Shown here: positions 1 through 18,318 of the stretch, in pieces
Layout of the letters: each line of letters starts with the position of its first letter
Numbering within the stretch: the stretch's first letter is position 1
Assembly: GCA_037447605.1 (NCBI GenBank)
Contig: JBBHKD010000030.1
Location: 1 to 18,318, forward strand
DNA length: 18,318 nt
Source: Zygnema circumcarinatum SAG 698-1b
Lineage: Eukaryota; Plantae; Zygnematophyceae
Direction of reading: 5' to 3'
The notes under the pieces: generated by a model
What the model was told of the DNA's origin: nothing
The model's database searches: none
Seen by the model: only the letters and a program-made list of their open reading frames with translations
Made by a program: the position numbers and the translations under genes

Positions 1-1110
1 ACTGTATGCTTTTACATCTGGCAAGATCAGTTTGACCGCCTCGATGTTGTGGAGTCCTGGATTACTTGCATGTACTTTGAGCTATCTTAAGCGCTTTGGC
101 TAAGTCGGCTTTAGTACTACCATCAAATACATGAGGCCTCACAGATGGTAGGCCGGTATGGAATGGTCATGTAGCCTCCAGCGCGGTCACGAGGCTCCAT
201 CTCTCCTTTGAGAGTCTACCACTTTTACCCAATCCTTAGGGGTTGGCGGTGGGGACACAATCTTGCATATGATTTTTGCAAGAATATCCGGAGCATATTT
301 CTCACGACTCATAAATACTTCCCTCGGCCCCCCTCTTCATTTGAGTCCCTAATAGGTACTCGGCTTCCACGAGATCGGACATCACGAGTTTGTCTTCATA
401 AAGATCTTTGAGATCTGAATGCTGCGTCATGGATTGGCTTATGACAATCAAATCGTCCGCATTATATGCCAAGTACACCATCTTGTCTCCTTCTCCACTT
501 CCTGTAGGCGGGTGATCTGTTTTAGTCTGGTAAATCCGGATTAACTTCATGAATTGTCGATTTTCTCGTACCCGGTCACGGGCACTTTTGCTTGGTAGGT
601 ACAAGCTCTTCACCAACACACTTTTACAAGTTTTCCTTACATACCTTGTAGTCCCTTGAGGTTGGTCATATAGATTCTTCCTCTAGATGGCGTAGTACGA
701 GGAAGCGGTCTTAATATCTAGTGGTGCCGCGTCGTGTCCTCGGAGAGTGCGATGGAGATTAGGGATCACGAGAGAGTTGAATTTGATATTTAGACAAAGG
801 TCTCACGGGTAGTCTAGTGTCCGTGCTAGCGTTGCCGCTGCTGACCGGTCGGCTTTGTACTTTATCAGTAAGCCCCGTCAGGATTTCCTTTTGATTTTAA
901 GACCCATTGCATCTATGGTCTTTTACGCCGTGAACGCTGCTCCAGAGCGCCACGTGCCATTCTCGGACGGTATGGCAACTCCTTTGTCGATAAGCAGGTA
1001 CTCAGCGCTTATTCGCGTCCATTACTCTCTCCAAGCGGCTTGCGGTTTGGGGCTCGAATCTTCACCATCGAGCAGTTGCCATGGTACGCAAAATCCGAGA
1101 GTCGATTAGG
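1..1110 (-). pseudogene. pol: Degenerate Ty1/copia reverse transcriptase (RVT_2-type pol fragment)
   Basis: Minus-strand translation with frameshifts gives the copia RT motifs in order: WVLKSKGNPDG..KYKA (~850-910), DIKTA..EE.IY.DQPQG (~660-725), KSLY..KSARD and YLAYNADDLIV (YVDD equivalent), MSDLVEAEYLLG (ORF 302-619), KY..DIL...MQDC.P, IPYR...MYLM. The frame is broken repeatedly. Confidence 0.85.
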
Positions 1111-1240
1111 AGCGCCTTGATCTCGGCCTCCGCCCGACAATTTCTTGCCGGGGTGTCCGTCACGGAGTGCTGCGTAGAGGTCCAAACGCACGAGGAGAAC
1201 TTGTCGGCCGGGTTCCCTGCGTGGTGAATCAATCACGGAT
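1..1240 (-). mobile_element. Internal fragment of a Ty1/copia LTR retrotransposon, interrupted at ~1240 by gypsy A1
   Basis: Copia RT remnant at 1-1110. The sequence up to 1240 lies upstream of RT (integrase-RT linker position) and stops where the A1 LTR begins. The copia ends are outside the window. Confidence 0.7.
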
Positions 1241-1969
1241 TGATTAGCGGCTTCTGATCACCCCAAAAGGAAGAGGGTTATAGAGCGTGGCTTTATGTTT
1301 CCATCGATAGGTACCCTAGCGGTTAGGGCATCCGGATGCCTTATATATAGGAGCGGCGGGAGTCTGAGTTGTTCCTGAAGCGGTTGCGTGGGAGCCGCCA
1401 TAATCTCTATGGGCCGCGTCGGCCAGGTCCCCTCCTCTCGGCGTAGGGAGGATCACGAGCTAACGGCACCGCAGGACCAATCCGGTCCGCGGTGGATCAC
1501 GGGCCGCGGCGGATCCCCAGAATTGTGCGGATTGCGTCAGATGCGATCGCGGTCACCGATGTCTGGACCTGATTTGTCGGTCGGGCGCTGGCGTAGCAGC
1601 GTAGAGCTCGGCAGATGCACCGGCGTACGGCGGCAGCGTACGCGTCAGCGGTGCCGCAGCGGAGAATACGGCGAGCGACCGTCACGTTAGCCGCCTCGAC
1701 TCGGTATTCGGTGAGAGAGAGGGACCGCGTGGCAGTGCGCCGATTGGGCGACCTAACTTCGATCCTCCATCTTTGGTAGGGTTCCAGCGAGGGGAAGTGT
1801 ATAGGGGCGTGGGTGACGGTCGTCACCCAACCAACATACCGGCATACGGTTGCACGCCCGTCCCGGGCTGCTCCCCACTCTGAAGCTCTCTCTCTCTCTT
1901 GCTCTCTCTCCCGCTGAACTCTGGTGTGTGATTCCGCGCAGGCTGAAGGGGCGGATTTCAGCCGTTACA
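1241..1969 (+). repeat. 5' LTR of gypsy A1 (family A LTR)
   Basis: Starts TG and ends GTTACA. Homologous to 10156-10912 and 16653-17405 (CTTCTGATCACC, GCGTGGCTTTATGTTT, GTCGTCACCCAACCAACATACCGGCATACGG, CT tract). Followed by a PBS. Confidence 0.88.
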
Positions 1970-1970
1970 T

Positions 1971-1983
1971 TGGTATCAGAGCC
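1971..1983 (+). promoter_or_regulatory. Primer binding site, tRNA-iMet (A1)
   Basis: TGGTATCAGAGCC, 1 nt after the LTR terminal CA. Complementary to the 3' end of plant initiator tRNA-Met. Confidence 0.92.
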
Positions 1984-2022
1984 GCGTTGCGGCCTTCTTC
2001 TTTTGGGAGAACCTAGTGGGTC

Positions 2023-2887
2023 ATGGTGACCACTCAGCAGGAAGTAGGAGGGACGGGGCCCTGGGGCCGCCACCTCCGCCTCGGGTTCAGGAGCGAGGAT
2101 GGAGGGAGACCTTGCCAGGGGAGCTGCGGAGTCCACATGGAGGGCCGAGTCAGAAACCCCACGGATGACCAAGGTCATCCGTTTCTCCCTCGGATTCCAC
2201 CCGTGCGGCGCTCGGCAGAATCAGCAGATCATGATGAGGCCCGATACTTGTGGGCGTCCTTGAAAGATGAAGAGAGGATTGTGAGGCGGGAGTGGATGTA
2301 GCGGCGTCGCCACCATGGCACGTACGAGGCGGTGGGCGACATGGAAGCTCACGGTCGCCCGAAGCGATTGGACCGCGCTCGAGATGGAGTTCGGGAACTG
2401 GCGGAGAGGCTCCGAATCATCGAAGAAGGTATGCCCCGAACCCCCCCTCAGGCTGTAGAGGCAGTGGATGCGGCAGGTCCTGGGGAAGGGGTTAGGCAAA
2501 CCACTCCGGTGGCGTCGTCTGTCCCGACGCCCCAACCGGCTGCCGGAAGCAGCCGGCAGAAGTCCGGACCCCCTGGTTTTTCCATGGGGGGAAGCCACTC
2601 CCATGGGGGTGGCGAACCGCCACCACCAGCGATGGGGACCCGTGGTGCTGGCGGCGGAGGAGAGGATCGATCCTCAGTTGCTCCTCATAACTACTGAGAT
2701 GCGACGAGGTCGGGCAAAAGGTAGCCCGCTTTCCTTTTTGGGGCGAACATCCTGCGGGCTGGCACCGATTGGCGGTGGATTTGCGGAATCAAACAAGGGG
2801 TTACCTTCTTCGCGACCAGCATCCCCCTCCGGTGGGTAGCTTTCTTAGCACCCAGCACTCGAAGGAGCCGCATACGTGTGTATGAGG
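2023..2887 (+). pseudogene. gag: gag, N-terminal part (A1), frameshifted and truncated by insertion of B
   Basis: Starts GTCATGGTGACCACT (MVTT), as A2 does at 10964. 2700-2887 aligns to A2 11640-11815, ending at the ..PAL.GAAY.VYE motif region. Confidence 0.75.
2882..2887 (+). repeat. Left target-site duplication of element B (ATGAGG)
   Basis: ATGAGG precedes the TG of the B LTR and recurs at 18058-18063 after the terminal CA. The uninterrupted homologous site in A2 (11810-11815) has one copy. Confidence 0.85.
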
Positions 2888-3535
2888 TGTAGCGTGCCCT
2901 TCTGGCGGCGTGACCACGGAAGTACTCACTTAGTGTCTTATGACTATCCTTCATCTCGGCGCTGGCGGGATAGGTTAGGACGCTGCCAAGACCGCAAGAG
3001 GTCTTGGGCTCGATCCTTGTTACAGGCAAGGGATCTCTTTTGGATCGTACTGGTCGTCCGTACGGGTGTACGGACGCACCGACATACGGATCCCGCAGCC
3101 AGGGATCTGGCCGCGCGCCGCCGCACGTCGGCGCGCCGCACGGCGGCGTGACCCGCGAGATGCGGCGGCATCTTTGACGAAGAGTACCGTCCGATGCTAT
3201 GCGGACGGTACGTGAGCCGACTTCTGTCGGCAGCGATCGCCCGGTACGCGGCAGCGCCAGCGTCTCGGCAGCGCCCGTGAGGCTCTGGCGGCGAGACCCG
3301 CGGGCTTGTCCACCGGCCGATAACTTCGGCTAAGGATCTCCGCCAGCGGCCAGACTCTGATTAAGGCAGTCAGCTCGGTCCTCCCATCGCGGTAGGGGGT
3401 TGAAGGGGGCTTCCGGGGGCCTGCGCTCAGGGGAGAAGCTCTTTGTACCAGCATTGAGCTCAGCTCCTCTCTCTCTCTCTCGCTTCCTCTCTTGACACTT
3501 AGACTCCGAGCAGCTGCCGGGGGCAGGTTGTTGTG
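2888..3535 (+). repeat. 5' LTR of element B
   Basis: Starts TGTAGCG. Colinear with 17411-18057 (GATAGGTTAGGACGCTGCCAAGACCGCA, GATCTCTTTTGGATCGTACTGGTCGTCCGTAC, GCTCTTTGTACCAGCATTGAGCTC, CT tract, GGGGCAGGTTGTT). The 3' end and PBS (~3533-3553) are garbled, so the right boundary is approximate. Confidence 0.82.
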
Positions 3536-3599
3536 CTCAGTGAGTTTAGAGGCTATGAGGAATTTCTTTTGGGAGGGACCAGCCGCATTTGCGGCGCGA

Positions 3600-5293
3600 T
3601 TCATGCAAGCTGGCGGCAGCGAGATGGCGTCGCCACTCCCACCTCCCCTCTCTGGGTGGAGGAGGGCGTGGACATGAGGCGCGAACGGCGCTGGAAGCAG
3701 CCGCTGGACGGGCCCCGGGCCGCTGACCCCACCTGGAAGCTGCCCCTTCTTCTTCCGCGAGGGGCGGAACTCAGCGACCAGCCGCTGCGGGAGGAGCAGC
3801 GCCCATTCGCGGCCCGCGGAAGCGGCGGCGCCCTCCACTGGCGCCCGGCGAAGGTCGGAAGAGACTTACTCGGCCGGGGCGAAACACCCGAACACCAGGT
3901 GGAAGTGTGGGGGGTGCCCCATCCCGATGGATGGGGATGAAGTCCTCCCATGCGGCCCGGAGGCCCGGCGGTTGAACTCTGGCGCTTTTCAGCCCGGCGG
4001 AGGAGGCTGGCGGCACCGAGATGGCGAGCGGCGGGGCTTGGCGTTCGGCTGGCGAGGGCGTGGGGCGCCTCCTGGCCGAGATCTTTGAGCGGGGCCAGCA
4101 AAACCGCGAGGACCCTCCCCCCTCCGACCCAGCCCCGGTAAGCCCACAACCCTCACAGCCAGCATTTCTTGTCTGATGGGAAGTGACAGCACTCACAGGG
4201 GAAATAGAGGCTACGGCGCTTCGTAGGTATTACAGGACCCTCACTTTCATTCAGGCTGCCTCACGGCGGTGGAAGTGGAGTCCCGCAGCGCTCCCGACCA
4301 CGGTACGGGAGCTCCGCCAGCTGGCTGCTTCCCGCCGGCGGGAGGCGTACGCCCGTTCCTTTGAAGGAAGGTGGCGGACGCCCGGCGGCAATCACCTTTT
4401 GGCTGATGTATTTGGCCCGGTGGGGCGGCCGGTAAAATTCGCCCGGCGCACGACCTCCCGAGAAATGTCGAGGCGAGGTCCCCTCCCGTCTCACTACGGG
4501 GGATGCGGCTGCTATCGCGATTACCCAATTGATCATTAGGTAGAGGCCGATGCGTGGGTACAGTAATGTACCAATGCCCTCCCGCAATGGGTGAACTTTG
4601 CTTCACCAGCTTTTGAGGCGTGGCATGGGTGTCTATCTTGGGCCGCCAAGGCTTTTAATCGGTAAAGACTTTGAGAGTTGAGTCGAACTTCTCAAACACT
4701 GGCATCCACAGGATCCCGATGTTGCAGGGCGAGTTCGATGCATGCGGTAGGCGTGGAAATTTAATTCCTACGAGAATTGCGCGTCGCGGCTTGGGCTTAT
4801 TTACCAGAAAAGTTCCCACCTGGTCCAGAAGAATTCTTCTTAAATTCAGCCATGGATTGAAAGCTTAAAATACGTTGAGGAAAGCGACTTGTTGAATGTC
4901 CTGCATTACCTTGGAACAGCAGGGACAGCCTATGGATGATGGTGATGTTTGCGGTGCGGTCCAAGCGGCGTTGCACCTCTGAGGATGGTGCGGGGAGTTC
5001 CGTCCCCTGGCGATGCTTGGACGCGATTGACGACGGCGCCAAAGCTGATGCGCCCGGTGACGACTGGGGAAATAGCGAGAGGAAATTTCCTTCCCTCTCA
5101 CCCGGCGGCACCAACGACCCGCGGCCGCCAAAACTTGCTCCACCGAGGAGATGGAGGCTTTGCTTGGCAGCGGAAAACAGAGATGTTTGGATTCGCGAGG
5201 AAAGTGGGGCATAGGTCTTATGACTGCCCATCTTTCAAGAAGGATAGGAAGGGGAAAGGGCCGGCGGAAAACGGCTCCCCACCGGCAGCTTAG
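3600..5293 (+). pseudogene. gag: gag of element B (retrotransposon gag core and CCHC knuckle), frame broken; start approximate
   Basis: 4585-4870 yields fragments QWVNFASPA, ELLKHWHPQDPDVAGR and PGPEEFF..FSHGLKA, matching A2 gag (AWVSFAYPA, ELIKHFGALDPGLEAR, PGQAEFFFHFRNGLKP). Damaged knuckle at 5184-5227 (..GHRSYDC). C-terminus DRKGKGPAENGSPPAA*. Confidence 0.72.
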
Positions 5294-5310
5294 GGGTCTC
5301 TGCTGGTGGG
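5266..5310 (+). promoter_or_regulatory. Candidate -1 ribosomal frameshift signal (element B)
   Basis: G_GAA_AAC in the gag frame (5266-5272), 5-nt spacer, stem CCCACCGGCAG/CTGCTGGTGGG (5278-5288/5300-5310), with gag TAG (5291-5293) in the loop. Same layout in A2. Confidence 0.7.
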
Positions 5311-5478
5311 CTTGACAGTAGGGGGGGCAGCGCATTAGCTGCCATCACTAGTGTAGAATGTTGTATTCCAAGGGCGGATGACATTCTTAAAGTGATTGGG
5401 GGAGTTTTCAGCGGGAATCTGTTGTTTGTGTGCGATGCATTCCCTGCTGATTATTCATTGCCACCTGCTATGCTTGTG

Positions 5479-5488
5479 NNNNNNNNNN
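5479..5488. other. Assembly gap (10 N); four more at 8226-8235, 12062-12071, 12846-12855 and 13650-13659
   Basis: Runs of exactly 10 N. Comparing A2 with B shows the true gaps are longer: the protease N-half and the GPF region of B, and the whole protease-to-RT start of A2, are missing. Confidence 0.97.
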
Positions 5489-8235
5489 CAGATTTCTGGC
5501 AGCGTCAGCGTGAAGTTGAAGATGCAGTTTTACTCCGGGGTAGTCAACTGCTTGTTGACATTGTTGGCCCCAAGGACAGACTTCATCTTGGGGAGCAAAT
5601 GGCTGACGCTTATGGGCGCTCAGCTAGATTTTGTTATCCCTAACTGCGTCCTCCGCAGTGAGGGAAGACGCATAACGCTGCAACCAGGCACTCCTTCGGG
5701 ACCAGCCTCGTCGCAGTCATCTTTGTCGTTTCTGTGCTCCGCCATGCAATTGGGCAAAGCACTAAAAACGAGTAGCATCTTGTTTATGGTGCAAGTCATG
5801 ACGGCAACCGAGGACGCTCATGACGGGGATCAGGAATGGCAACCCACTGCGGGTGAAACAATGCCATCTGTCCCAACTGTGTTTCAACCTTTGTTGAAGG
5901 CGTTTGAGGATGTGTTCCCAGACGATCTGCCAAGGGGTTTGCCTCCAGCCCGAGGGGTGGGGCATACCATACCCCTTGAACCAGAAGAGACACCTCCTTG
6001 GAGGCCTATCTATAGGCTTAGTCCAAAGGAGACTGAGGAGATGCGTAAGCAACTCGCTAGTCTGTGTGATAAGGGCTGGATTGAACCCAGCCAGAGTCCC
6101 TTTGGGGCTCCTATCCTTTTTGTCGGCAAAAAGGATGGGTCTTTACGAATGTGCATCGATTACCGGGCACTGAACAAGATCACGGTAAAGAACAGGTTTG
6201 CTTTACCGCGAATAAATGATCTGCTGGATCGTCTGCAAGGGGCGAAGGTGTTCACCTCGCTCGACCCCTTGCGGCGGGGCTCCGCTCCAGTCCGTGTCAC
6301 CGGTCTTGATGTTCTAAAGAGCGGCATTTCGGGCCTTGGGTGGTCACTTCGGTACAAAGGTCTTTACCTTTTGGACGACCAGCGCTCGGCGCTTTACATT
6401 CAAAAGGCGTGATGAGCGAAATGTTGCGATGCGGCATGGATGACTGTCCTTGTCTGCACCGGATGATATCACGGTATTACGGCTAAGACGGGGCCGTACG
6501 ACATCTTGTGCATATGCGCCAAAGTGTTACGAGGTGTTCGCGAAACTTACACGTTTTATGCGGCGAGAAAGAAGTCAACCAACTTCATGCAACGAGAGTT
6601 GTTGTATCTTGGGCATATCTTGAACGATCAGGGACTGAAACCTGATCCAGCCAAGGTGTCTGCTGTAAAGACATGGGCTGTACCGGCTGATCTTCATCAG
6701 TTGCGGTCTTTTCTTGGATTTTGCGAATTATTTTTTAAGTAAGTTTATCAAGGCTTTAGTAGTTGGTAACTCTTACCAATTTGACCGCGTTCGTTATGGC
6801 GTATGCATGAACACGAGGAGTGCCGGGGCGGCATTTGATGGTGTGAGACATGCGCTTGTGACAGCACCTACGTTGAGGTTGGCTGATCCGCGGTTGCCAT
6901 ATGAAGTGGTATGTGACGCTTCGGGGTTCGCTTTGGGTGCGGTCTTGTTCCAAGGCGACCAACCTGCTTCACGAAATTATAAGATGAACAGTGAGCGAAA
7001 CTGCCTGCATGACCGGGGAAGCTCTTGGCGTTGTTCACGCCACGAGGACATGGCGTTGTATTTGGAGGCGGTGTGATCCCTGGCCCGGTCGCAGGACCAC
7101 CGTCCAGCGGCGTTCCTCTCCACTCCGTGAGACTCTTTTCGAGGCCCGGCGGCGAGCCTGGCCCCAGTGCGAGTTCCTCCATGATTCGGCTGCAAGTGAG
7201 GCGGGAGGCTGAATATAGCGGACCAGCTGGCGAGGCAACCCATTCATCTAGCACGGATGATCGCATTTCCGTCATTTCAGTGTTAGTGATGCGGATGAAG
7301 GGTGGAGCCGAAGGGCCCGTAGCCAGCGTTTACATCTCCCGTTATGTTTGTCATGAAGCCCCTCCACCCGGTGACGCTGATCAACCCTCTAACTCTCTCG
7401 ATTCCGGACAGATGGTCGGGGAGGGTACAGCGTGATCCGCTTTGTTCTGGGCGGCCAAGGCAATGGCTATAAGAACAAGCTTGTGCTTCGGGACGGTTTT
7501 TGGTACCACGATAAGCAGTTAGTTGTACCCAAGGCTGGATCTGTACGGCAGCTCATACTGAATGAGATGCACGATCCTCCGTACAGAGGCCATATGGGAG
7601 TTGCCAAAACCCGTGAAGCACTGCTCCGAGAATTCTGGTGGCCCGGAATTACAGCGGACGTGGAGGCATATGTACTCGCATGCCCTACTTGTCAACGGGA
7701 TAAGCCTCGCACGGGACCTGTGCCTGGCTTGCTCCAGCCCCTCGCCCCTCCTTACAAGAAGTGGGAGAGTGTGGGTATGGATTTGATCCATGAGACTTGT
7801 GGCGACTAGGGGTTTTTGACTTCATCCCACCGTGTTTGTGGAACCCGCTGAGCAGATGGTGCATTTTGGAATGCTAGCAGGCGGTGAGGGCGGCGAGATG
7901 CTGCGGTATATGTTGACAGGGTAAGATTAGAGCATGGACTTTCAATCTGAGATCATCTCAGATCGTGATACCCGATTCACAGGGCATTTCTGGAAAGAGA
8001 TCCTCCGGATTATCGGGACTAAGCAGGCTATGAGTACAGCCTTCCACCCTCAGACAGATGGCCAAACTGAGTGGGTGAACCGGATTCTGGAAGACTATTT
8101 GAGGCATTATGTGGGACCCATCCCGGATGGATGGGATGAACTGCTCCCGGTGGCTGAGTATGCCATTAACAATGCATTCCAGGAATCAATCGGTACCACT
8201 CCTTTCTTCTTGAACTTTGGTCAGCNNNNNNNNNN

Positions 8236-8340
8236 CGTGAAATGGTTGGGCTATGGGGTTGAACATAGCACGTGGGAACGTGAGAGCAATCTGACAAATT
8301 GCAAGGAGCTCCTGAGGTTGTACTGGGAGGCGCAGACCGC
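8236..8340 (+). other. Chromodomain (C-terminal part) of the element B integrase
   Basis: VKWLGYGVEHSTWERESNLTNCKELLRLYW fits the chromodomain consensus VKWxGyxxxxxTWEpexnL..c.ell..y. Confidence 0.9.
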
Positions 8341-8425
8341 TGGTGAGCGGGCGAGGGCGGCTAGGGGGGTTCCCGAACTGTTGGTGCAAGGAGGGCCCGA
8401 GGGGGGGCAGCCTTCAAGGAAGGGA

Positions 8426-10004
8426 TAAATACATGCCCGGATGAAGCTCAAAACTTTCTTCATCTTCCACTTGGGCCACATACCGCTTCCTCCACAAACT
8501 GCCTTCCATCCACCCCTTGCCAGGTGCGCACAGCGGAAAACTAAACGCGTCACCTACAAGAACACTTCAACTCCTCCATGGTCTTGGCTCCTCAAGTCCA
8601 CGCTCCTCCAATGATCTCCTCGTGTGGAGCAACACACCGCCCATACAATGGCTGCCTCCACTCATCCACCACGTCAATCCAACACGAGGACTCACATGAC
8701 AAATGATGCAGTAATAAGGAGAAAGCCCACGGCCATAAAACTCCTTAAACTTCAAGAGTGTAATACAAGCTCTTTGAGGAAATCTACATAATCCCTTATG
8801 CTAGATTCTCCTCCTCACATAATATCCTATTCTCGATAGCCTACACACACACGGCTACTGATGTAAAGCGCCTTTTGCCTCCGCAGACTCCTCTGCCTCC
8901 AACACATGAGGGACACATCATCTAACTTCTTCACTAAAGCAGCATGATGAGAGCTAGTTCTCACGACCTTACGTGCCTGGGCGGACTCCTCTACGCCTCA
9001 ACCTCTGCTTGCTCTTCCTAAACAACCGACGACAGAGCAGCATTACATTCAGAGAGAGTTGAGCTTGAGTTAGTGAGTGAGTTGAGTGAGAGAGCCAAGC
9101 TTGCTCTCTCTTAAGCAACCATGGCGATGTGACGTGACACAATTGTCACGTCACGGCCGGCCCTTGCATTCCGCTGAGTGAGCGCACTCAAAATTAGCGA
9201 CCAGCTAGTCGCCTCATAAACCTCACGGTGAGCGACCTGAACTATTGTCCATCGATGCAGTTCAGCGGCAGCGACCCTCGTGCTTCTTGGCGTAGGCCAT
9301 TACGCGTACACTCGAGCCAGCGAACCCACTCGCGAGTGGTCCACGTAAGCGGCGTCTCGATTCGCCGCCCGACATTCCCTTGTATGCGTTTCAGCGCGCA
9401 ACTTTGCTCTCCGGCGTTTGGCGCTTAACGCGCGACCAATCAGAATCGCTTCGTCGATGCCGGCGCACTTTCGCGCGCACCGGCAGCTTTGCGCTCCATT
9501 ACTCCACACTGTGGCTGCGACCAATGTGCCTCCAAATATCTCACAAGTTCTCCACCGACATTGCGAACCTGCGTCACGTCACACTCCGAGATGCGCCGAG
9601 TTTTGCGTGCTGTCTCGACCAATCATGTCGCTTCACACAAATCCGCCTCCCGCGCTTCCAAATCTCCGCTTCCGCAAACTTCCGCGTCGTCCGTACAATT
9701 CGCGCGCCGTCCGTACGGCTTCGCTTGCTCCAATCGTCAAGCGCACTCAGCGCCCCCTTTTAATTCGATCTAAGTCAAAGCCGCAAACCTCGACCCTAGA
9801 CTATTCCTAGACCTGCGTACAGTGCCCTAATGATCACGGGCACCCCCATGTTGATCCTACCACACCAAACATGACCGTTCATGCATGACATTGTCCCTAT
9901 ACCAGCACATTGATCTCACGGTCAACATTCATGCTAGGATTTAGAAACCACCAACACCTTGATGTACCCAATACATCAACAGCGAACTGTCCACGCAGCT
10001 ACTC
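8426..10004. other. ~1.58 kb segment unique to element B between the pol end and the conserved pre-PPT region
   Basis: Absent from the equivalent position of A2, where the pol end runs directly into GGACTTGGCCGGGATT. Bounded by GGAAGGGA at 8418-8425 and 10005-10012. Confidence 0.7.
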
Positions 10005-10128
10005 GGAAGGGACTTGGCCGGGATTAACTGAGCCCTCCATTACACCCACATGACGGTAGATACCTCTTAAAAGCTGCTTGAGGTGCCAGTTACTTTTCCC
10101 GGTGAGCGAGGCGTTCCGCATTACTCAC

Positions 10129-10135
10129 GAGGGTA
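10129..10135 (+). promoter_or_regulatory. Polypurine tract of element B (short)
   Basis: GAGGGTA directly before the 3' LTR TG. Context GTGAGCGAGGCGTTC..CATT.CTC..GAGGG matches the A2 pre-LTR region. Confidence 0.65.
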
Positions 10136-10155
10136 TGTGTGGCGTGCCTTCGGCG
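10136..10155 (+). repeat. First ~20 bp of the 3' LTR of element B
   Basis: TGTGTGGCGTGCCTTCGGCG resembles the B 5' LTR start TGTAGCGTGCCCTTCTGGCGGCG. The LTR continues at 17411 (TGACC..). Start is 10136 or 10138. Confidence 0.75.
10151..10155 (+). repeat. Left TSD of element A2 (CGGCG)
   Basis: Partner CAGCG at 17406-17410 (4/5, a CpG-type transition). The uninterrupted B 5' LTR has one CGGCG before TGACC (2906-2910). Confidence 0.82.
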
Positions 10156-10912
10156 TGTAGCTGGCCTTCTGATCACCCCAAGGGGAAGGGTATAGAGCCC
10201 GAAGCGTGGCTTTATGTTTCCATCAATGCGGTACCCTACTTGGTTAAAGCGCCGGATACCCTATAGAACGAGGAGAGTCTGAGTTCCGAACTATAAGAAG
10301 CTGGATTGCCCGTGGGGCCGCCACATAATCTATGGGCCCCGTCGGCGACAAGGTCCCCTCTCTCGGCCGTAGGGAGGATCCGCGAGGCTTTCGCGGCACC
10401 CGCAGGACCAATCCGATTCGCGATTGGGCGTCGAGGGCCGCGGCCGAATCCCCTTTAGGTACTTGCGATAAGGTAAAATGCGTTACTTGATTTACCCGAT
10501 AAAATGCAGACCTTGGTATCCCGGTCGAGCAGCGCCCAGCGCGCCAGGCTCCGGCCGTGCACAGCATCTGGCTTAGCGCTGCCAGCACGTCGCGCTTGCG
10601 CCAGCAAATGCGGCGAGCATTAAATGCGTTATACACCTCACGACCCATGCGAGTCGAGGAACCGTCGCGATTTGCCGTGGACAGCCCTTCTTCAATCCTC
10701 CATCTTTGGTAGGAGGTTCAGCGAAGGCGTATAGGGGCGTGGGTATTTGTCGTCACCCAACCAACATACCGGCATACGGTGGCACGCCCTTCAGGGGCTG
10801 CTCCCCACTCGGAAGCGCTCTCTCTCTCTCTCTCTCGCTCTCTCCCTCTCTTTGCTGAACCCTGAAGTGTAATTCCGCGCACGGCTGAAGGGGCTAGATT
10901 TCAGTCGTGACA
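10156..10912 (+). repeat. 5' LTR of element A2
   Basis: TGTAGC...GTGACA. 10748-10901 is identical to 17241-17394. Followed by a PBS. Confidence 0.92.
10730..10737 (+). promoter_or_regulatory. Possible TATA-like element of the family A LTR, upstream of a CT-rich tract
   Basis: TATAGGGG is present in all three A LTRs (1800-1807, 10730-10737, 17223-17230), ~85 bp upstream of a (CT)n tract (1886-1912, 10818-10853, 17311-17346). Function is inferred from position only. Confidence 0.35.
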
Positions 10913-10914
10913 TT

Positions 10915-10926
10915 TGGTATCAGAGC
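10915..10926 (+). promoter_or_regulatory. Primer binding site, tRNA-iMet (A2)
   Basis: TGGTATCAGAGC, 2 nt after the LTR terminal CA. Confidence 0.92.
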
Positions 10927-10963
10927 AGGTTTTCGTTTCTTTTTAGGAAGGAACCTGTTGGTC

Positions 10964-12265
10964 ATGGTGACCACTCGCCGGGCCGGAGGGGACCCGGGGC
11001 CCTCGGGGCCGCCACCTCCACCTCCCGTTCCCCGGGACGAGGAGATGGAGGAGAACTCGGAGACTACGCCCGTCCCTATGGAGGGCGAGTCGAGCCCGCG
11101 AGCCAAGGTCACCCCGGAGACCCTCGCCCCCTCTTCCACCCAGCAGGGCCCGTGGCTCGGCCAAAGCCTCAAGCCCGGGCCTACCCCATGATGGGCCCAC
11201 ATCACACCGATAGTAGCGGCCAGAAGATGAGAGCAGGATTGAGATTTGGGAAGAAGCCTGAGAAGCGAGCGTGAACACGTTGGCTGCTCAAGGAAGGTGG
11301 GCGACATGGAGCTCCGCGGTCCGCCCGTCACGGTGAACCGCTCAAGCGAGTTCGAACGCTTTGGACTGACCGGAGGATCGAAAGAAAGGTATGCCCCGAA
11401 CCCCCAGGCTGTAGGGCGGTGGATGCATGGTCACGGGAAGGGTTAAGCGGTACTCGGTGGCGTCGTCGTCGCCGGCGCCCCAACACGCTTTGACGGCCCG
11501 GCTGATCGGACCCCTGGTTTCCGCGAGGGGAGTCACTTACGGGGTGACCGAACCACCAGCGATGGGGACCCCGTCGTGCCTTCTTGGCGGAGAATCGATC
11601 CTGCGGACCGCTCCCATAACCCTGAAGGATACCCGGCGGAATCCGGGCCAAAGTAGCCCGCTTTCTTTTGGGGCGAACATCCTACCACGGACTGCTCGAT
11701 TGAGCAGTGGTTGGGTCAAACGAAGGGTTACCTTCTGGCGACCAACTGTCCCCCCCTGCATGGGTAAGCTTTGCTTACCCAGCACTCAGAGGAGCCGCAT
11801 ACCGTGTGTATGAGGGCCTCTCTGATGAGATTGGGGACGATTGGGATAAGTTCAGAGATGAACTTATCAAGCACTTTGGGGCCTTGGATCCCGGCTTGGA
11901 GGCCCGGGATAAGTTTCAGAACATGGTCCAAACCGGCAGCGTCAAGCAGTTTCTGCGAGACCTGCGACAAGTGGTGCCTCAGATCACCACTCACAAGCCT
12001 GGACAGGCTGAGTTCTTTTTCCACTTCAGGAATGGCTTGAAGCCACACCTGAGGAAGCAGCNNNNNNNNNNAGCAGCCGGAAGTGGCTGCCCGCCCACCC
12101 ACTGCACGGCCGCAGAAGTTGACTCCAGAGGAAATGGAGAAGATGCAGCGGGAGAACAAGTGTTTCCGTTGCCGCAAGGAGGGGCATAAGGCCCGAGATT
12201 GCCCTCTGAACTCCAAGGACAGGAAGGGCAAGGGGCCGGAAAACCCCAACCCACCAGCAGCTTAG
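10964..12265 (+). pseudogene. gag: gag of element A2 (gag core and CCHC zinc knuckle); 5' half frameshifted; one N gap
   Basis: MVTTRRAGG start. Clean core 11707-12061 (WVSFAYPALRGAAYRVYE..WDKFRDELIKHF..QTGSVKQF..FRNGLKPHLR). CFRCRKEGHKARDC (CX2CX4HX4C) at 12161-12202. TAG at 12263-12265. Confidence 0.88.
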
Positions 12266-12282
12266 GAGTCGTTGCTGGTGGG
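12238..12282 (+). promoter_or_regulatory. Candidate -1 ribosomal frameshift signal (element A2)
   Basis: G_GAA_AAC in the gag frame (12238-12244), 5-nt spacer, stem CCCACCAGCAGC/GTTGCTGGTGGG (12250-12261/12271-12282), with gag TAG in the 9-nt loop. Confidence 0.72.
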
Positions 12283-12855
12283 GACGATAGGCTGGGGAAT
12301 CAGGGAGTCGTGGCTGCCATCACAATTAGGAAATTGTTGTTCCTTCGACCTCTGGATATTGTGAAATTGATGGGCAGACCTTTCGGAGTGCATGACTTGT
12401 TTGTTTGTAATGCGCTTCCGGATGCAATTCCTTTATCCCCCGCCACTGTGGTGACTCTTTCTAAATTTATGGATGTAGTGATGAATGGTGATTGGCATGT
12501 CTTTATCCTCAATGTCATGGGCGATGATGTTCTCATGCAATGTGCCATGGATGCTTTGCATGTCATGGGAAACACCTCCATGTCTTGAAGTGCATGTTTG
12601 GTTCCTCAGCATGGCGGAGTTCGCACCTTTCCCCAGCGCCGCCTTCTTGGCGGTTGGTGAAGCGATTGAGGAAGGGCACCGCGTTGGTGCAAGGGATGGA
12701 AGGACCCACCAGCTTGCTGGTTGGCTCACCCTACACATTGGTGTGGAGGACGGCTCGTCCTCAACCCTCGCATATAGTGCGATCTATGTTCCATCTTGCC
12801 CATCGTGCCATGACCTTCATCGGATCAGCCAATGGCCACCCAGCANNNNNNNNNN

Positions 12856-14449
12856 ACAAGGGCTGGATAGAACCCAGTCAAAGCCCCTTTGGGGCGCCCA
12901 TCTTGTTCGTTGGGAAGAAAGATGGTTCGTTGAGGATGTGCATTGATTATCGCGCACTCAACAAGATTACTGTAAAGAATCGATTTGCTTTACCACGTAT
13001 CGATGATCTGTTGGATCGTCTTCACGGTGCCAAAGTGTTCACATCACTTGATCTTGCTCAGGGGTACCATCAGATCCGTGTTACGGAAGCTGATGTGCCA
13101 AAAACTGCGTTCCGAACGCCGATTGGTCATTTCCAATATAAGGTGTTGCCCTTTGGATTGACTAATGCTCCGGCGACTTTCCAGGCTGTGATGAACGAGA
13201 TGTTCATAGGCATGGATGACTTTGTTTTGGTTTACCTCGATGATATCCTTGTCTTCAGTAAGACGAAGGAGGAACATCTTGAACACGTTCGGAAAGTGTT
13301 TGAGACCCTGAGGGAAACACCAATTTTATGCCAAGAGGAAGAAGTGTCACTTCATGCAACGTGAGTTGCTTTATCTTGGGCATATTCTCAATGATCAGGG
13401 CCTTCGGCCTGATCCTGCCAAAGTTTCCGCGGTAGAAACTTGGGCGCCACCGACTGACTTGCATCAGTTGCGGTCTTTTCTGGGCTTTGCGAATTATTTT
13501 CGTAAGTTCATCCAAGGGTTTAGTAAACTCGTTACCCCCTTGACTAATTTGACACGTTCCGGTGTCCCCTTTACATGGACCCCTGAATGCCAGGATGCAT
13601 TCGAAGGTGTGCGCCATGCACTTGTTACCGCACCCACTCTCCGTTTAGCNNNNNNNNNNACAAGGGCTGGATAGAACCCAGTCAAAGCCCCTTTGGGGCG
13701 CCCATCTTGTTCGTTGGGAAGAAAGATGGTTCGTTGAGGATGTGCATTGATTATCGCGCACTCAACAAGATTACTGTAAAGAATCGATTTGCTTTACCAC
13801 GTATCGATGATCTGTTGGATCGTCTTCACGGTGCCAAAGTGTTCACATCACTTGATCTTGCTCAGGGGTACCATCAGATCCGTGTTACGGAAGCTGATGT
13901 GCCAAAAACTGCGTTCCGAACGCCGATTGGTCATTTCCAATATAAGGTGTTGCCCTTTGGATTGACTAATGCTCCGGCGACTTTCCAGGCTGTGATGAAC
14001 GAGATGTTCATAGGCATGGATGACTTTGTTTTGGTTTACCTCGATGATATCCTTGTCTTCAGTAAGACGAAGGAGGAACATCTTGAACACGTTCGGAAAG
14101 TGTTTGAGACCCTGAGGAAACACCAATTTTATGCCAAGAGGAAGAAGTGTCACTTCATGCAACGTGAGTTGCTTTATCTTGGGCATATTCTCAATGATCA
14201 GGGCCTTCGGCCTGATCCTGCCAAAGTTTCCGCGGTAGAAACTTGGGCGCCACCGACTGACTTGCATCAGTTGCGGTCTTTTCTGGGCTTTGCGAATTAT
14301 TTTCGTAAGTTCATCCAAGGGTTTAGTAAACTCGTTACCCCCTTGACTAATTTGACACGTTCCGGTGTCCCCTTTACATGGACCCCTGAATGCCAGGATG
14401 CATTCGAAGGTGTGCGCCATGCACTTGTTACCGCACCCACTCTCCGTTT
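12856..14449 (+). repeat. Tandem ~790 bp duplication of the RT block across an N gap (12856-13649 and 13660-14449)
   Basis: Both copies start ACAAGGGCTGGATAGAACCC immediately after a 10-N gap and read identically except for one extra G near 13314 in copy 1. Confidence 0.95.
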
Positions 14450-16279
14450 GGTTGGTAGCTTATGTGAAGTGGTTTGTGGCGGCTTGAGTTCGCCTTGGAG
14501 TGCGTCTTGTTTCGAAGGATGGTCAACCTACGGTATGAAAGTGCATAAAATGAATCGGCGGCGTAACTATTACGCAGCGAGCGAGGCGCTGCGGTGGTCC
14601 ACTTGCTCCCCGAGAACATGGCGGTGCTATTTAGAAGTAGCGGTCACGCTGGTCATACGACCACCGCCCGTACAGCACGTTCCTCTCCAACCCAAGCGAG
14701 ACCACTGTGTCTAGAAGCGGCCGAGCCGCGGCTGATGCAGGGATTCCTCAAGGTTTGTTGCCGGTGGGTTTTATGGGCCGGAGAAATTTGGTGTAAGGAA
14801 AAACCCGAGTAGGCGCTCTCGGCATCTTCACGGATGGTGCTTCGTCGACTTCAGTGTTGGTGGAGCGAGATGGCGAGTGAGGGGGCGGCCAACCCCGAGT
14901 CTCCGTCTCCAGTATGCTTTGTCATAGATCCCTCCACCAGTGACGCAGTCAACCCTCCTGCTCTCTCTGAACTCAGACAGATGATCCAGGAGGGGTATGC
15001 TGGTGATCCTTTGTTCCTGGATGGCCAAGGTAATGGCTATAAGGACAAAGTGGTGTCTAAGGACGGATTCTGGTACCACGGCCCGTGATTAGTCGTGCCC
15101 AGGCGGGGGCCCATGCTGGCGGCTCGATACGGGTAGAGCTACATGATCCTCCGTGCGAGGTCACATAGGTTGCCAAAACCGTGAGGCCGCTGCTCAGAAG
15201 TTGGTGGCTGCGGACTCACCGAGGGATGTGGCGTAATGGCGCACCGGCTTGTGTCCAACTTGTCAGCGAAACAAACCCCGCCTTTGGCGAAGGATCCACG
15301 GCCGGTACGCAGCCCCTCACCTCCTTTTCGGAAATGGGATAGTGTGGGTATGGACTGATCACCGAGATCTTCACAGCAGCACCTCGAGAACATGACTCCA
15401 TCCTGCGTCTTTGTCGTCATTTCGGCAAGATGGTGCATTTCGCCAACTACTAAGGCAATTTGGGGCCGGCAGATTACGCGATTTGTATGTTGACAAAGTA
15501 TGGAGCGGCATGGTCTTCGGTCGGTGTAATGGAAACCCGTGATCCCTGCGTTACGGCCATTTTTTGGGCCGGAAGTGCTCAAAATCGTGTAGGGACGAAG
15601 CAGGCGTTAGTCTGACTTTCCACCCACAAACCGATGGCCAGACGGAACGGGTGAACAGGATCCTGGAAGATTACCTCCGGCATTATGTGGGACCTACCCC
15701 GGATGGGTGGGACGAACTGCTCCCAGTGGCTGAGTATGCCATCAGTAAATGCTTACGAAGTCATTGGTACCACCCCTTTCTTCTTGAACTGGCCGGCATC
15801 CTCTAAATCCCACAGCCAAGGATCCAGCCCCGATCAAGAGTGGAACATGGTGATCCACGAAACCCGATCCTTGGGGCTGAGGGAGGGGTGATGGGACTCA
15901 ACCTCCCGCAGTCAGATCTTTTGTCCGACTAATGTCTGAGGCGCTGCAGAGGGCACGGCAGACCCTGCTAGCGGCCCAGTCGCGACAAAAGGCCTATGCT
16001 GACCGTCACCGTACCCAACTCACCTTCAACGAAGGCGATGAGGTGTTGCTAAGTACGGCGAACTTGAGACTCAAAGCTTATGGCGGAACACGTAAGCTGT
16101 GGCCCCGCTTCATCGGACCTTTCAGGGTCGTGAAGCGAATCAATGATGTCGCTTACAGGTTGGATTTACCATCCCACATGAAGGTGCATCCGGTCTTTCA
16201 TGTGGGTTTGCTAAAGGTCTACCGTAGCGATGGGAGGATCCAACCACCTCCCCCACCAGTGGAACTTGAAGGTGAACTT

Positions 16280-16450
16280 GAGTATGAGGTTGAAACCATT
16301 CAAGCCCACCGTCTTGTGAGCAAGGGTCGATCTTCCCGCGTCCGCGAATACCTGCGTGAAGTGGTTGAAATTTTATGGGGTTGAACATAGCACATAGGAA
16401 GCGAGGGCAACAACCAATTGCCGAGGAAGCTCATCAACTTTATGCTGGGA
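16280..16450 (+). other. Chromodomain of the element A2 integrase (partly garbled)
   Basis: EYEVETIQAHR..REYL, followed by GGTTGAACATAGCAC, the same nucleotides that encode GVEHST in the B chromodomain (8257-8271). Confidence 0.8.
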
Positions 16451-16645
16451 GGCGCGAGGCGCGGGGAAGCGGCGAGGCGACGCGGGGGGATTCCGGAGCC
16501 GTCCAGCGCAACTTGAGGAAAAAGGACTTGGCCGGGATTGCTCGGTGAGCCCTCGGTTATCCGCGTGGGATTCGGCGGCGTCGCAGTTGAAACTACGGTG
16601 CCTTTACTACCCCACTTAGCGTGAGCGAGGCGTTCACATTCTCCT

Positions 16646-16652
16646 GAGGGAA
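16646..16652 (+). promoter_or_regulatory. Polypurine tract of element A2 (short)
   Basis: GAGGGAA directly before the TG of the 3' LTR. Confidence 0.7.
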
Positions 16653-17405
16653 TGTAGCCAACCTTCTGATCACCCAAGGGGAAAGTTTACTTAGAGCCCG
16701 GCGTGGCTTTATGTTTTCCGTCAATCGCGATACCCTGGTTAAAGCATGCGGATACCCTATAGGGCGAGGAGTCCTAGGTTGAACCTTAAGAACTTCGTTT
16801 CACCGTGGGGCATACACCATCTCTATGGGCCCCACGTCGGCGACCAAGGTCCCCCTCCTCTGGCGTGAGGGAGGATCGCAGAACTAACGGCACCCGCGGG
16901 ACCAATCGGTCCGCTGATTGGATCAGGGCCCGGCCGGATCCCCAGAATTAAGCACGCGTCAGGTAAAGATGCGTTACTTGATTTGATAGTGCAGACGGCC
17001 TGTCGATCCGGAAGCCGGCGCCCTTGTAGAGCTCCGACCCGTGCGCCCAGCTTTGTCTGGCGGCCTTGGCGTCGCTGTGCGCCGCCATCTTGGCGAGCAT
17101 TACGTCGCGTTGTACACCTGCGACCCATGCGGGTCGAGAGAGGGACAAACCGGCGTTTTACCATTGGGCGGCCACTTCCCGATCCTCCATCTTTGGTTAG
17201 GAGGTTAGCCCGAGGGGAAGCGTATAGGGGCGTGGGTGACTGTCGTCACCCAACCAACATACCGGCATACGGTGGCACGCCCTTCAGGGGCTGCTCCCCA
17301 CTCGGAAGCGCTCTCTCTCTCTCTCTCTCGCTCTCTCCCTCTCTTTGCTGAACCCTGAAGTGTAATTCCGCGCACGGCTGAAGGGGCTAGATTTTAGTTG
17401 TGACA
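16653..17405 (+). repeat. 3' LTR of element A2
   Basis: TGTAGC...GTGACA, preceded by a PPT and followed by the TSD CAGCG. Confidence 0.92.
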
Positions 17406-17410
17406 CAGCG

Positions 17411-18057
17411 TGACCCTGGAGGCGTACTCATAGTGATACTATGACTATCCCTTCATCTCAGCGCCTGGCGGATAGGTTAGGACGCTGCCAAGACCGCAGG
17501 AGGTCTTGGGCTCGATCCTTGTGGCGTGCAAAGGATCTCTTTTGGATCGTACTGGTCGTCCGTACAGGTGTACGGACGCACCGACATATCTGAGATCCCG
17601 CGACCAGAAGATTTGGCCCGCACTGGCGCCCTTGCCGCGTCGGCGCCCTTCAGCGGCCGACCAGCGAATCTTGGCCCGGCATCTTTAACAAGTACGCGTC
17701 CGTCGCATGCGGATGAGCAGTCCCGACTACATCGGTCTGCCCGTCTTGCCCGGTAGCGGCAGCGCCCGGCGTCACCGGCGCGCCCCGTGAAATCTTGGCC
17801 CGAGACAGCTGAGCTTGTCTCGGCCGATAACTCGGCTAAGGATCTCCGCCACGCGGCGGGCTCTGATTGGGCAGTCCCGCTCCCGGTCCTCCATGCTAGT
17901 AGGGGGTTCGAAGGGGGGAGCTCAGGGGGGCTGCGCCGGGAGGGGAGACCATCCGAGCTCTTTGTACCAGCATTGAGCTCACGCTCCTCTCTCTCTCTCT
18001 CTTCCTCTCTTGACACTTAGACTCTCAGAGCAGCCTGCCAGGGGGCAGGTTGTTACA
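17411..18057 (+). repeat. Remainder of the 3' LTR of element B
   Basis: Colinear with 2911-3533. Ends GGTTGTTACA and is followed by the TSD ATGAGG. Confidence 0.88.
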
Positions 18058-18318
18058 ATGAGGGCCTCTCTGATGAGATTGGGGACGATTGGGATAAGTT
18101 CAGAGATGAACTTATCAAACACTTTGGGGCCTTGGATCCCGGCTTGGAGGCCTGGGATAAGTTTCAGAACATGGTCCAAACCGGCGTCCAGCGGTTTTAG
18201 CGAGACTGCCGCGGCAATGGTACCCAATCCTGCTTCGCTGGCTTTGGAAACGGTGAGTTCTTTTTCCACTTGAGGAATGACTTGAAGCCACACACGAGGA
18301 AGCGAGCTGCTTGAACTA
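18058..18318 (+). pseudogene. gag: Resumed gag core of element A1
   Basis: 18058-18185 matches A2 11810-11937 at 126/128 nt (EGLSDEIGDDWDKFRDELIKHFGALDPGLEA). It then becomes garbled but stays colinear. Confidence 0.9.

Follow-up and report, generated by a model that had tools for sequence, protein, structure and literature searches.

How does a retrotransposon whose gag and pol lie in different reading frames make its Gag-Pol protein? The question is raised by a stretch of 18,318 bases from the draft assembly of the zygnematophycean alga Zygnema circumcarinatum SAG 698-1b (contig JBBHKD010000030.1, positions 1 to 18,318 of the forward strand; hereafter the window), which has 55.6% G+C, is interrupted by five 10-N gaps and is filled by Ty3/gypsy elements. 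On the + strand, Pfam domains occur in the order Retrotrans_gag, zf-CCHC, RVT_1, RT_RNaseH_2, Integrase_H2C2, SH3_Tf2-1 and Chromo. This domain order, the C-terminal chromodomain, long terminal repeat (LTR)-like copies and a primer-binding site identify Ty3/gypsy chromoviruses (Metaviridae), a group of very high-copy chromodomain retrotransposons. The window holds two gag-pol junctions, one near 5266 in a copy designated B and one near 12238 in a copy designated A2, and the DNA of these copies is about 70% identical where it can be aligned. An earlier note, made from the letters alone, had proposed that both junctions carry a cassette for -1 programmed ribosomal frameshifting. That interpretation is supported by our analysis, since codon periodicity switches by -1 at the cassette, diverged copies cross it without indels and conservation ends with the stem of its hairpin. 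We put the probability that the cassette is a working -1 frameshift signal at roughly three in four, its function being what we infer from these patterns. The mechanism itself is not new, as -1 frameshifting at gag-pol is textbook knowledge for Ty3/gypsy elements.

Anatomy of the gag-pol junction

The features of the two junctions, all on the + strand, are as follows.

4949 to 5293, +: B, C-terminal gag frame (0 frame), aligned with A2 gag, zinc knuckle disrupted; ends at TAG 5291-5293
5248 to 5478, +: B, open -1 frame from the last upstream stop to the N gap; the encoded segment is homologous to that of A2
5266 to 5272, +: B, slippery heptamer G_GAA_AAC in gag phase
5273 to 5277, +: B, spacer GGCTC, 5 nucleotides (nt); the same spacer is found in B-type contigs of four sequencing runs
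5278 to 5310, +: B, hairpin with arms 5278-5288/5300-5310, 11 base pairs (bp) including one G-U; loop 5289-5299 containing the gag TAG
12074 to 12265, +: A2, C-terminal gag frame with an intact CX2CX4HX4C knuckle (zf-CCHC, E=5.5e-7); ends at TAG 12263-12265
12190 to 12588, +: A2, open -1 frame extending into the expected protease region
12238 to 12244, +: A2, slippery heptamer G_GAA_AAC in gag phase
12245 to 12249, +: A2, spacer CCCAA, 5 nt
12250 to 12282, +: A2, hairpin with arms 12250-12261/12271-12282, 12 bp including one G-U; loop 12262-12270 containing the gag TAG

Gag codons start at residue 2 mod 3 in both copies, and the heptamer is therefore read as G_GAA_AAC in B and A2 alike. A backward slip by one base changes the A-site codon from AAC to AAA and the P-site codon from GAA to GGA, the latter retaining two Watson-Crick pairs and a G-U pair. 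The spacer is exactly 5 nt in both copies, within the range of about 5-9 nt known for such signals, and its sequence is free. Behind it stands a GC-rich stem of 11 bp in B and 12 bp in A2 with the gag stop inside the loop. The downstream -1 frame overlaps the 0 frame, which closes again soon after the gag stop, at 5336-5338 in B and 12362-12364 in A2. All of these elements had been described by the earlier note, and each could be read directly from the sequence at its coordinates or, for the stems, was also recovered by folding. Because the -1 frame opens only at 5248 (B) and 12190 (A2), any shift is confined to about 46 nt around the heptamer. The heptamer lies near the middle of this interval, which contains no other tandem-slippery motif. 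On its own the heptamer is not rare, as GGAAAAC occurs six times in the window where 2.7 occurrences are expected. One further occurrence, in B gag at 5172-5178, precedes the cassette by 94 nt; being out of phase and lacking a hairpin, it serves as an internal negative control.

RNA folding returned both hairpins as the minimum-energy and the centroid structure, with -23.6 kcal/mol and z = -4.35 for A2. To judge the rarity of such stems, we scanned for uninterrupted stems of at least 11 bp with at most one G-U pair and a loop of 3-12 nt, using block shuffles as the control. The + strand holds five such loci, compared with a mean of 0.3 in the shuffles; two of the five are the cassettes, and both of these stems begin exactly 5 nt behind an in-phase heptamer. 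The remaining three are located at 6110-6139 (B reverse transcriptase region), 9128-9155 and 16173-16206 (A2 integrase C-terminal region). The hairpin at 9128-9155 is a near-perfect palindrome (TGTGACGTGACA...TGTCACGTCACG) in "cargo" sequence past the B chromodomain.

Comparison of the stems in B and A2 reveals nine invariant pairs, two pairs changed on one side (A-U/G-U and G-C/G-U) and a loop-closing pair that is lost in B. The earlier statement that differing arm positions keep their pairing through G-U is thus correct for two of the three pairs, whereas the loop-closing pair is unpaired in B. A pseudoknot was considered as well. Loop and downstream sequence could form 5 bp at homologous positions (A2 12265-12269/12339-12343; B 5293-5297/5365-5369), about 70 nt apart, with two pairs G-U or changed on one side, which is within chance. 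We rejected this candidate as too short and too G-U-rich to count; the hairpin alone is supported. Covariance models of recoding-element families in Rfam 15 gave only chance-level matches, all far below the gathering scores.

Conservation and coding signatures of the two frames

Outside the spacer, 36 of 40 cassette positions are identical between A2 and B, compared with roughly 45-62% identity in the flanks (mostly in 21-nt windows). In the spacer, four of the five bases differ and the length is kept. The 3' arm lies past the gag stop and so has single-frame coding, yet no synonymous position of its GCT GGT GGG differs between the copies. Upstream of the cassette, mismatches are enriched at third positions of the gag frame (21/41 vs 25/83, p=0.03); downstream, they are enriched at third positions of the -1 frame (33/55 vs 40/110, p=0.005). 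Codon-position periodicity moves by -1 at the cassette, and the -1-frame peptides of B and A2 share 46% identity over 72 amino acids (E=3e-14), which bears out the earlier note's view that the conserved frame downstream is -1 relative to gag. Periodicity in both frames indicates purifying selection on both of them after the two families split, which is not expected of a dead shared mutation. The -1 segment behind the cassette (5290-5478 and 12262-12588) has no Pfam match, and neither a word search nor an ESM Atlas look-up returned relatives of the post-slip peptide.

We then compared the A2 junction with independent samples, using Logan contigs of four runs from four studies of the same organism aligned to 12072-12845 with a minimum likeness of 80%. 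They show the family to be extremely abundant. Diverged contigs cross the junction with no gaps at 12087-12446 (60 differences), 12237-12568 (28), 12237-12404 (8) and 12253-12423 (23), and junction-spanning contigs from three independent studies have 83-95% identity. Because such diverged contigs cross the junction without gaps, the frame relation is not an assembly error and is not confined to A2. Among the variants listed, no well-supported variant or indel falls within 12223-12284, and variable sites occur on both sides. Summed depth peaks at 12228-12279 and drops more than 20-fold past 12280, exactly where the 3' arm ends; cross-family conservation stops with the stem.

Contigs that match the stem only carry B-type flanks, and in each of the four runs these contigs end upstream in ...CCGGAAAACGGCTC or ...GCGGAAAACGGCTC. 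The B-type contigs of the four runs keep GGAAAAC together with GGCTC, and their indels farther upstream are in frame. In every subfamily seen, the heptamer stays GGAAAAC and is not replaced by synonymous GAG or AAT variants. In one run, which is RNA by guess only, a contig is continuous across the B-type junction; this is uninformative on minor isoforms and on expression. A second frame break in A2 (12577-12680) is copy-specific, as contigs of the other samples differ there by several 1-4-base indels, and positions 12592-12617 have zero support in three DNA runs.

Proposed frameshifting and competing explanations

In the mechanism that we propose, a ribosome translating gag would meet G_GAA_AAC with tRNA-Glu paired to GAA in its P site and tRNA-Asn paired to AAC in its A site, while the hairpin 5 nt downstream, at the mRNA entrance, would resist unwinding and impede translocation. 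A minority of ribosomes would slip one base back, with tRNA-Asn re-pairing perfectly with AAA and tRNA-Glu re-pairing with GGA through a G-U pair in the middle position. These shifted ribosomes would continue in the -1 frame through an extra N-terminal pol segment, protease, reverse transcriptase, RNase H and integrase; the predicted transframe junction of A2 is ...KGPEN followed by PQPTSSLGVVAGG. The majority would stop six codons on, at the TAG that lies in the loop, and make only Gag, and the outcome would be a set ratio of Gag to Gag-Pol. The re-pairing logic, the role of the spacer and the role of the structure in -1 frameshifting are established. Two other ways of changing frame or passing the stop were excluded. 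Transcriptional slippage does not apply, as a run of four A is too short to support it. Stop-codon readthrough fails because more 0-frame stops block the route to pol and the coding periodicity is in the -1 frame.

Several points weigh against a working signal. Under a strict XXX rule the first triplet should be GGG, and GGA is a non-canonical P-site triplet; this would lower the expected efficiency, not the plausibility. The B hairpin folds at -20.3 kcal/mol with a z-score of only -1.27 against shuffles of its own sequence, a weak value because shuffles of this very GC-rich 43-mer fold well too. In the two stems compared, no compensatory double change was found, so the pattern appears to be one of conservation, not covariation, and the earlier note overstated the retained G-U pairs, which do not amount to true covariation. 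Dual coding could explain some of the conservation at nucleotide level (12245-12265), and since the variants are those listed, strict invariance of the cassette is not proven. Both copies are decayed: the zinc knuckle of B is disrupted, A2 has further frame changes inside gag and near 12540-12680, the B frames before and after the N gap 5479-5488 cannot be related to each other, and both have additional frame breaks. No intact copy was seen. The -1 segment of either copy lacks a recognisable aspartic-protease active-site motif. The cassette was found in none of five related loci from other organisms (L001, L002, L083-L085), where frame arrangements are mixed: relative to gag, pol is in the -1 frame in L002 and L083, seems to be +1 in L001 and L085, and shares the gag frame in L084. 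These loci are unverified single copies, often decayed, and allow no inference on clade-wide conservation. Lastly, slippage and its efficiency are what we infer from the observed anatomy, conservation and coding signatures.

The decay raises the possibility that the frame change is an old mutation in a non-autonomous or dead lineage amplified in trans, with heptamer and hairpin kept for coding, packaging or dimerisation. The several frame breaks, the broken B knuckle and the missing protease motif would fit such a history, as would LTR-like copies only 70-76% alike and a stem devoid of compensatory changes. We nevertheless consider it unlikely. Two families diverged by about 30% keep the same frame relation with third-position periodicity in both frames, and the other frame breaks are copy-specific whereas the junction is free of indels in diverged copies from independent samples. 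Moreover, chance would hardly bring together a slippery site in the right phase, a spacer fixed at 5 nt but free in sequence, and a long stem of a rare kind.

Alternatively, pol could be expressed from a spliced or subgenomic mRNA, by internal initiation or by termination-reinitiation, in which case the hairpin would do something else and the heptamer would simply follow from conserved Glu-Asn codons. Some plant elements do splice, for instance Ogre (PMC6317226), and a TTG at 12199 lies in the A2 -1 open reading frame (ORF). We regard these routes as improbable, because the -1 frame is under coding constraint right from the cassette onward, the Logan contigs contain no well-supported joint that removes the junction, and Glu-Asn codons would equally permit the GAG and AAT spellings that are never seen. 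That the frame change is a sequencing or assembly artefact of a collapsed repeat is very improbable and already contradicted: for all the five gaps of the draft, a gap-bounded 0.8-kilobase (kb) tandem duplication of 99.9% identity and the unsupported stretch 12592-12617, contigs of three other studies reproduce the junction without indels and it occurs in two diverged window copies. The switch in periodicity, a junction free of indels in independent samples and a spacer constant in length but free in sequence disfavour all three explanations relative to frameshifting.

Related signals, related elements and the surrounding window

Among known systems, PEG10, a gene derived from a Ty3/gypsy LTR retrotransposon, shares a -1 shift at gag-pol (on G_GGA_AAC) and the A-site change from AAC to AAA (PMC4598141, PMC5009743), as well as a GC-rich structure a few bases downstream. 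In contrast to PEG10, the present heptamer is G_GAA_AAC with P-site tRNA-Glu re-pairing through G-U, and a hairpin only is supported where PEG10 has a pseudoknot. PEG10 is also a domesticated host gene with measured efficiency. The gag-pol signal of human immunodeficiency virus 1 (HIV-1; U_UUU_UUA plus stem-loop) likewise uses a simple GC-rich hairpin of about 11 bp and no pseudoknot (PMC4598141; PMC3561942) and sets the Gag to Gag-Pol ratio, the role proposed here; it differs in heptamer and spacer, belongs to an animal retrovirus and is experimentally proven.

The G_GAU_UUU site of pea enation mosaic virus 2 also begins with a non-homopolymeric triplet, GGA at positions 1-3, and likewise has a 0-frame stop close by and a hairpin behind it (PMC5009743; PMC4737148), but it drives viral polymerase expression, has UUU in place of AAC in the A site and involves long-distance RNA interactions. 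GGA as the first triplet is functional on plant ribosomes in this virus (PMC5009743), a precedent for the earlier note's view of GGA as a tolerated XXX variant. Fusagraviruses and papaya meleira virus have an identical GGAAAAC just upstream of the ORF1 UAG, and their downstream ORF is in the -1 frame (PMC4881467); these are double-stranded RNA viruses of fungi and plants, their sites are predictions only and their downstream structures are unrelated.

Among LTR elements, animal Ty3/gypsy elements commonly shift by -1 between gag and pol (PMC5009743); a 2003 survey summarised there counted 28 of 51 animal elements, and none from plants, with pol in the -1 frame. Neumann et al. (2019) give one ORF as the prevailing layout of the tRNA-Met-primed clades Tekay, Reina, Galadriel and CRM, a single stop codon as that of algal Chlamyvir, and overlapping frames as prevailing only in self-priming Tcn1 and in Selgy (PMC6317226, supplementary file 5). 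For the overlapping-frame clades, the table does not say in which direction the frame changes and lists no recoding signal. Tcn1 (mosses and club-mosses) and Selgy (Selaginella) resemble the present elements in their overlapping gag and protease-pol frames, but 83% of Tcn1 members are self-priming whereas an initiator tRNA-Met (iMet)-type primer site, TGGTATCAGAGC, lies 2 nt past the LTR here, and Selgy has a tRNA-Ala primer and no chromodomain (PMC6317226). It was thus fair of the earlier note to call frameshifting atypical for a tRNA-iMet-primed chromovirus, as tRNA-Met-primed clades prevail as one ORF (PMC6317226, supplementary file 5). An iMet primer site combined with overlapping frames matches no prevailing clade layout of the 2019 survey. 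A protein search with the reverse transcriptase gave a best identity of about 69%, so that the collection searched does not contain copies from the organism itself; the named relatives come from Closterium, Volvox, Haematococcus and various seed plants, which is compatible with a green-lineage host. A metagenome scan with a 17-nt pattern of 5' arm plus loop returned at least 80 matches, and those listed were all chance matches without heptamer or 3' arm. The related locus L083, an AT-rich chromovirus from a metagenome assembly, has its gag and protease in a -1 relation, with an in-phase G_GGA_AAG nine bases before the gag stop (1040-1100); stops farther on in its -1 frame mark it as a decayed copy.

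The cassette would be the recoding signal of a tRNA-iMet-primed chromovirus of a streptophyte alga and may, as we tentatively propose, be the first sequence-defined -1 signal of a green-lineage LTR retrotransposon. If so, a non-canonical P-site GGA and a simple hairpin, perhaps with a long-range loop contact, would be joined in one signal, which would offer a natural cellular test case of frameshifting on plant-lineage ribosomes. It would explain how a very abundant retrotransposon group sets its Gag to Gag-Pol ratio and account for the translation of the unrecognised segment that separates gag from protease. Defining such a cassette in an alga related to land plants would fill a small gap and would matter for annotation, where gene callers will break up these elements or assign them wrong frames if they do not model the shift.

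The LTRs, primer sites and chromodomain that delimit the elements are listed below.

1251 to 1969, 10156 to 10912 and 16653 to 17405: LTR-like copies, only 70-76% mutually identical
1971 to 1982, +: second iMet-type primer-binding site, identical TGGTATCAGAGC, behind the LTR-like copy 1251-1969
7934 to 8425, +: chromodomain match, in B only (Pfam)
10915 to 10926, +: A2 primer-binding site TGGTATCAGAGC, iMet type, 2 nt past the LTR end at 10912

The tRNA-iMet primer site that the earlier note had reported is the one at 10915-10926. The site at 1971-1982 may mark where the element containing B has its 5' end. Pfam recognised no protease in the window; in B, a C-terminal protease half (DFILGSKWL) becomes visible only past the N gap. 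The 0.8-kb tandem duplication lies in the A2 reverse transcriptase region, within 12846-14449. Each of its units begins at a 10-N gap (12846-12855 and 13650-13659), and it is probably a scaffolding artefact, not biology. The LTR-like copies are arranged as LTR-internal-LTR-internal-LTR, with another internal region starting past 17405, which suggests either old recombinant arrays or chimeric assembly of a collapsed repeat. Within that last region, 17408-18054 resembles 2908-3532 and 18058-18303 resembles A2 gag at 11810-12058.

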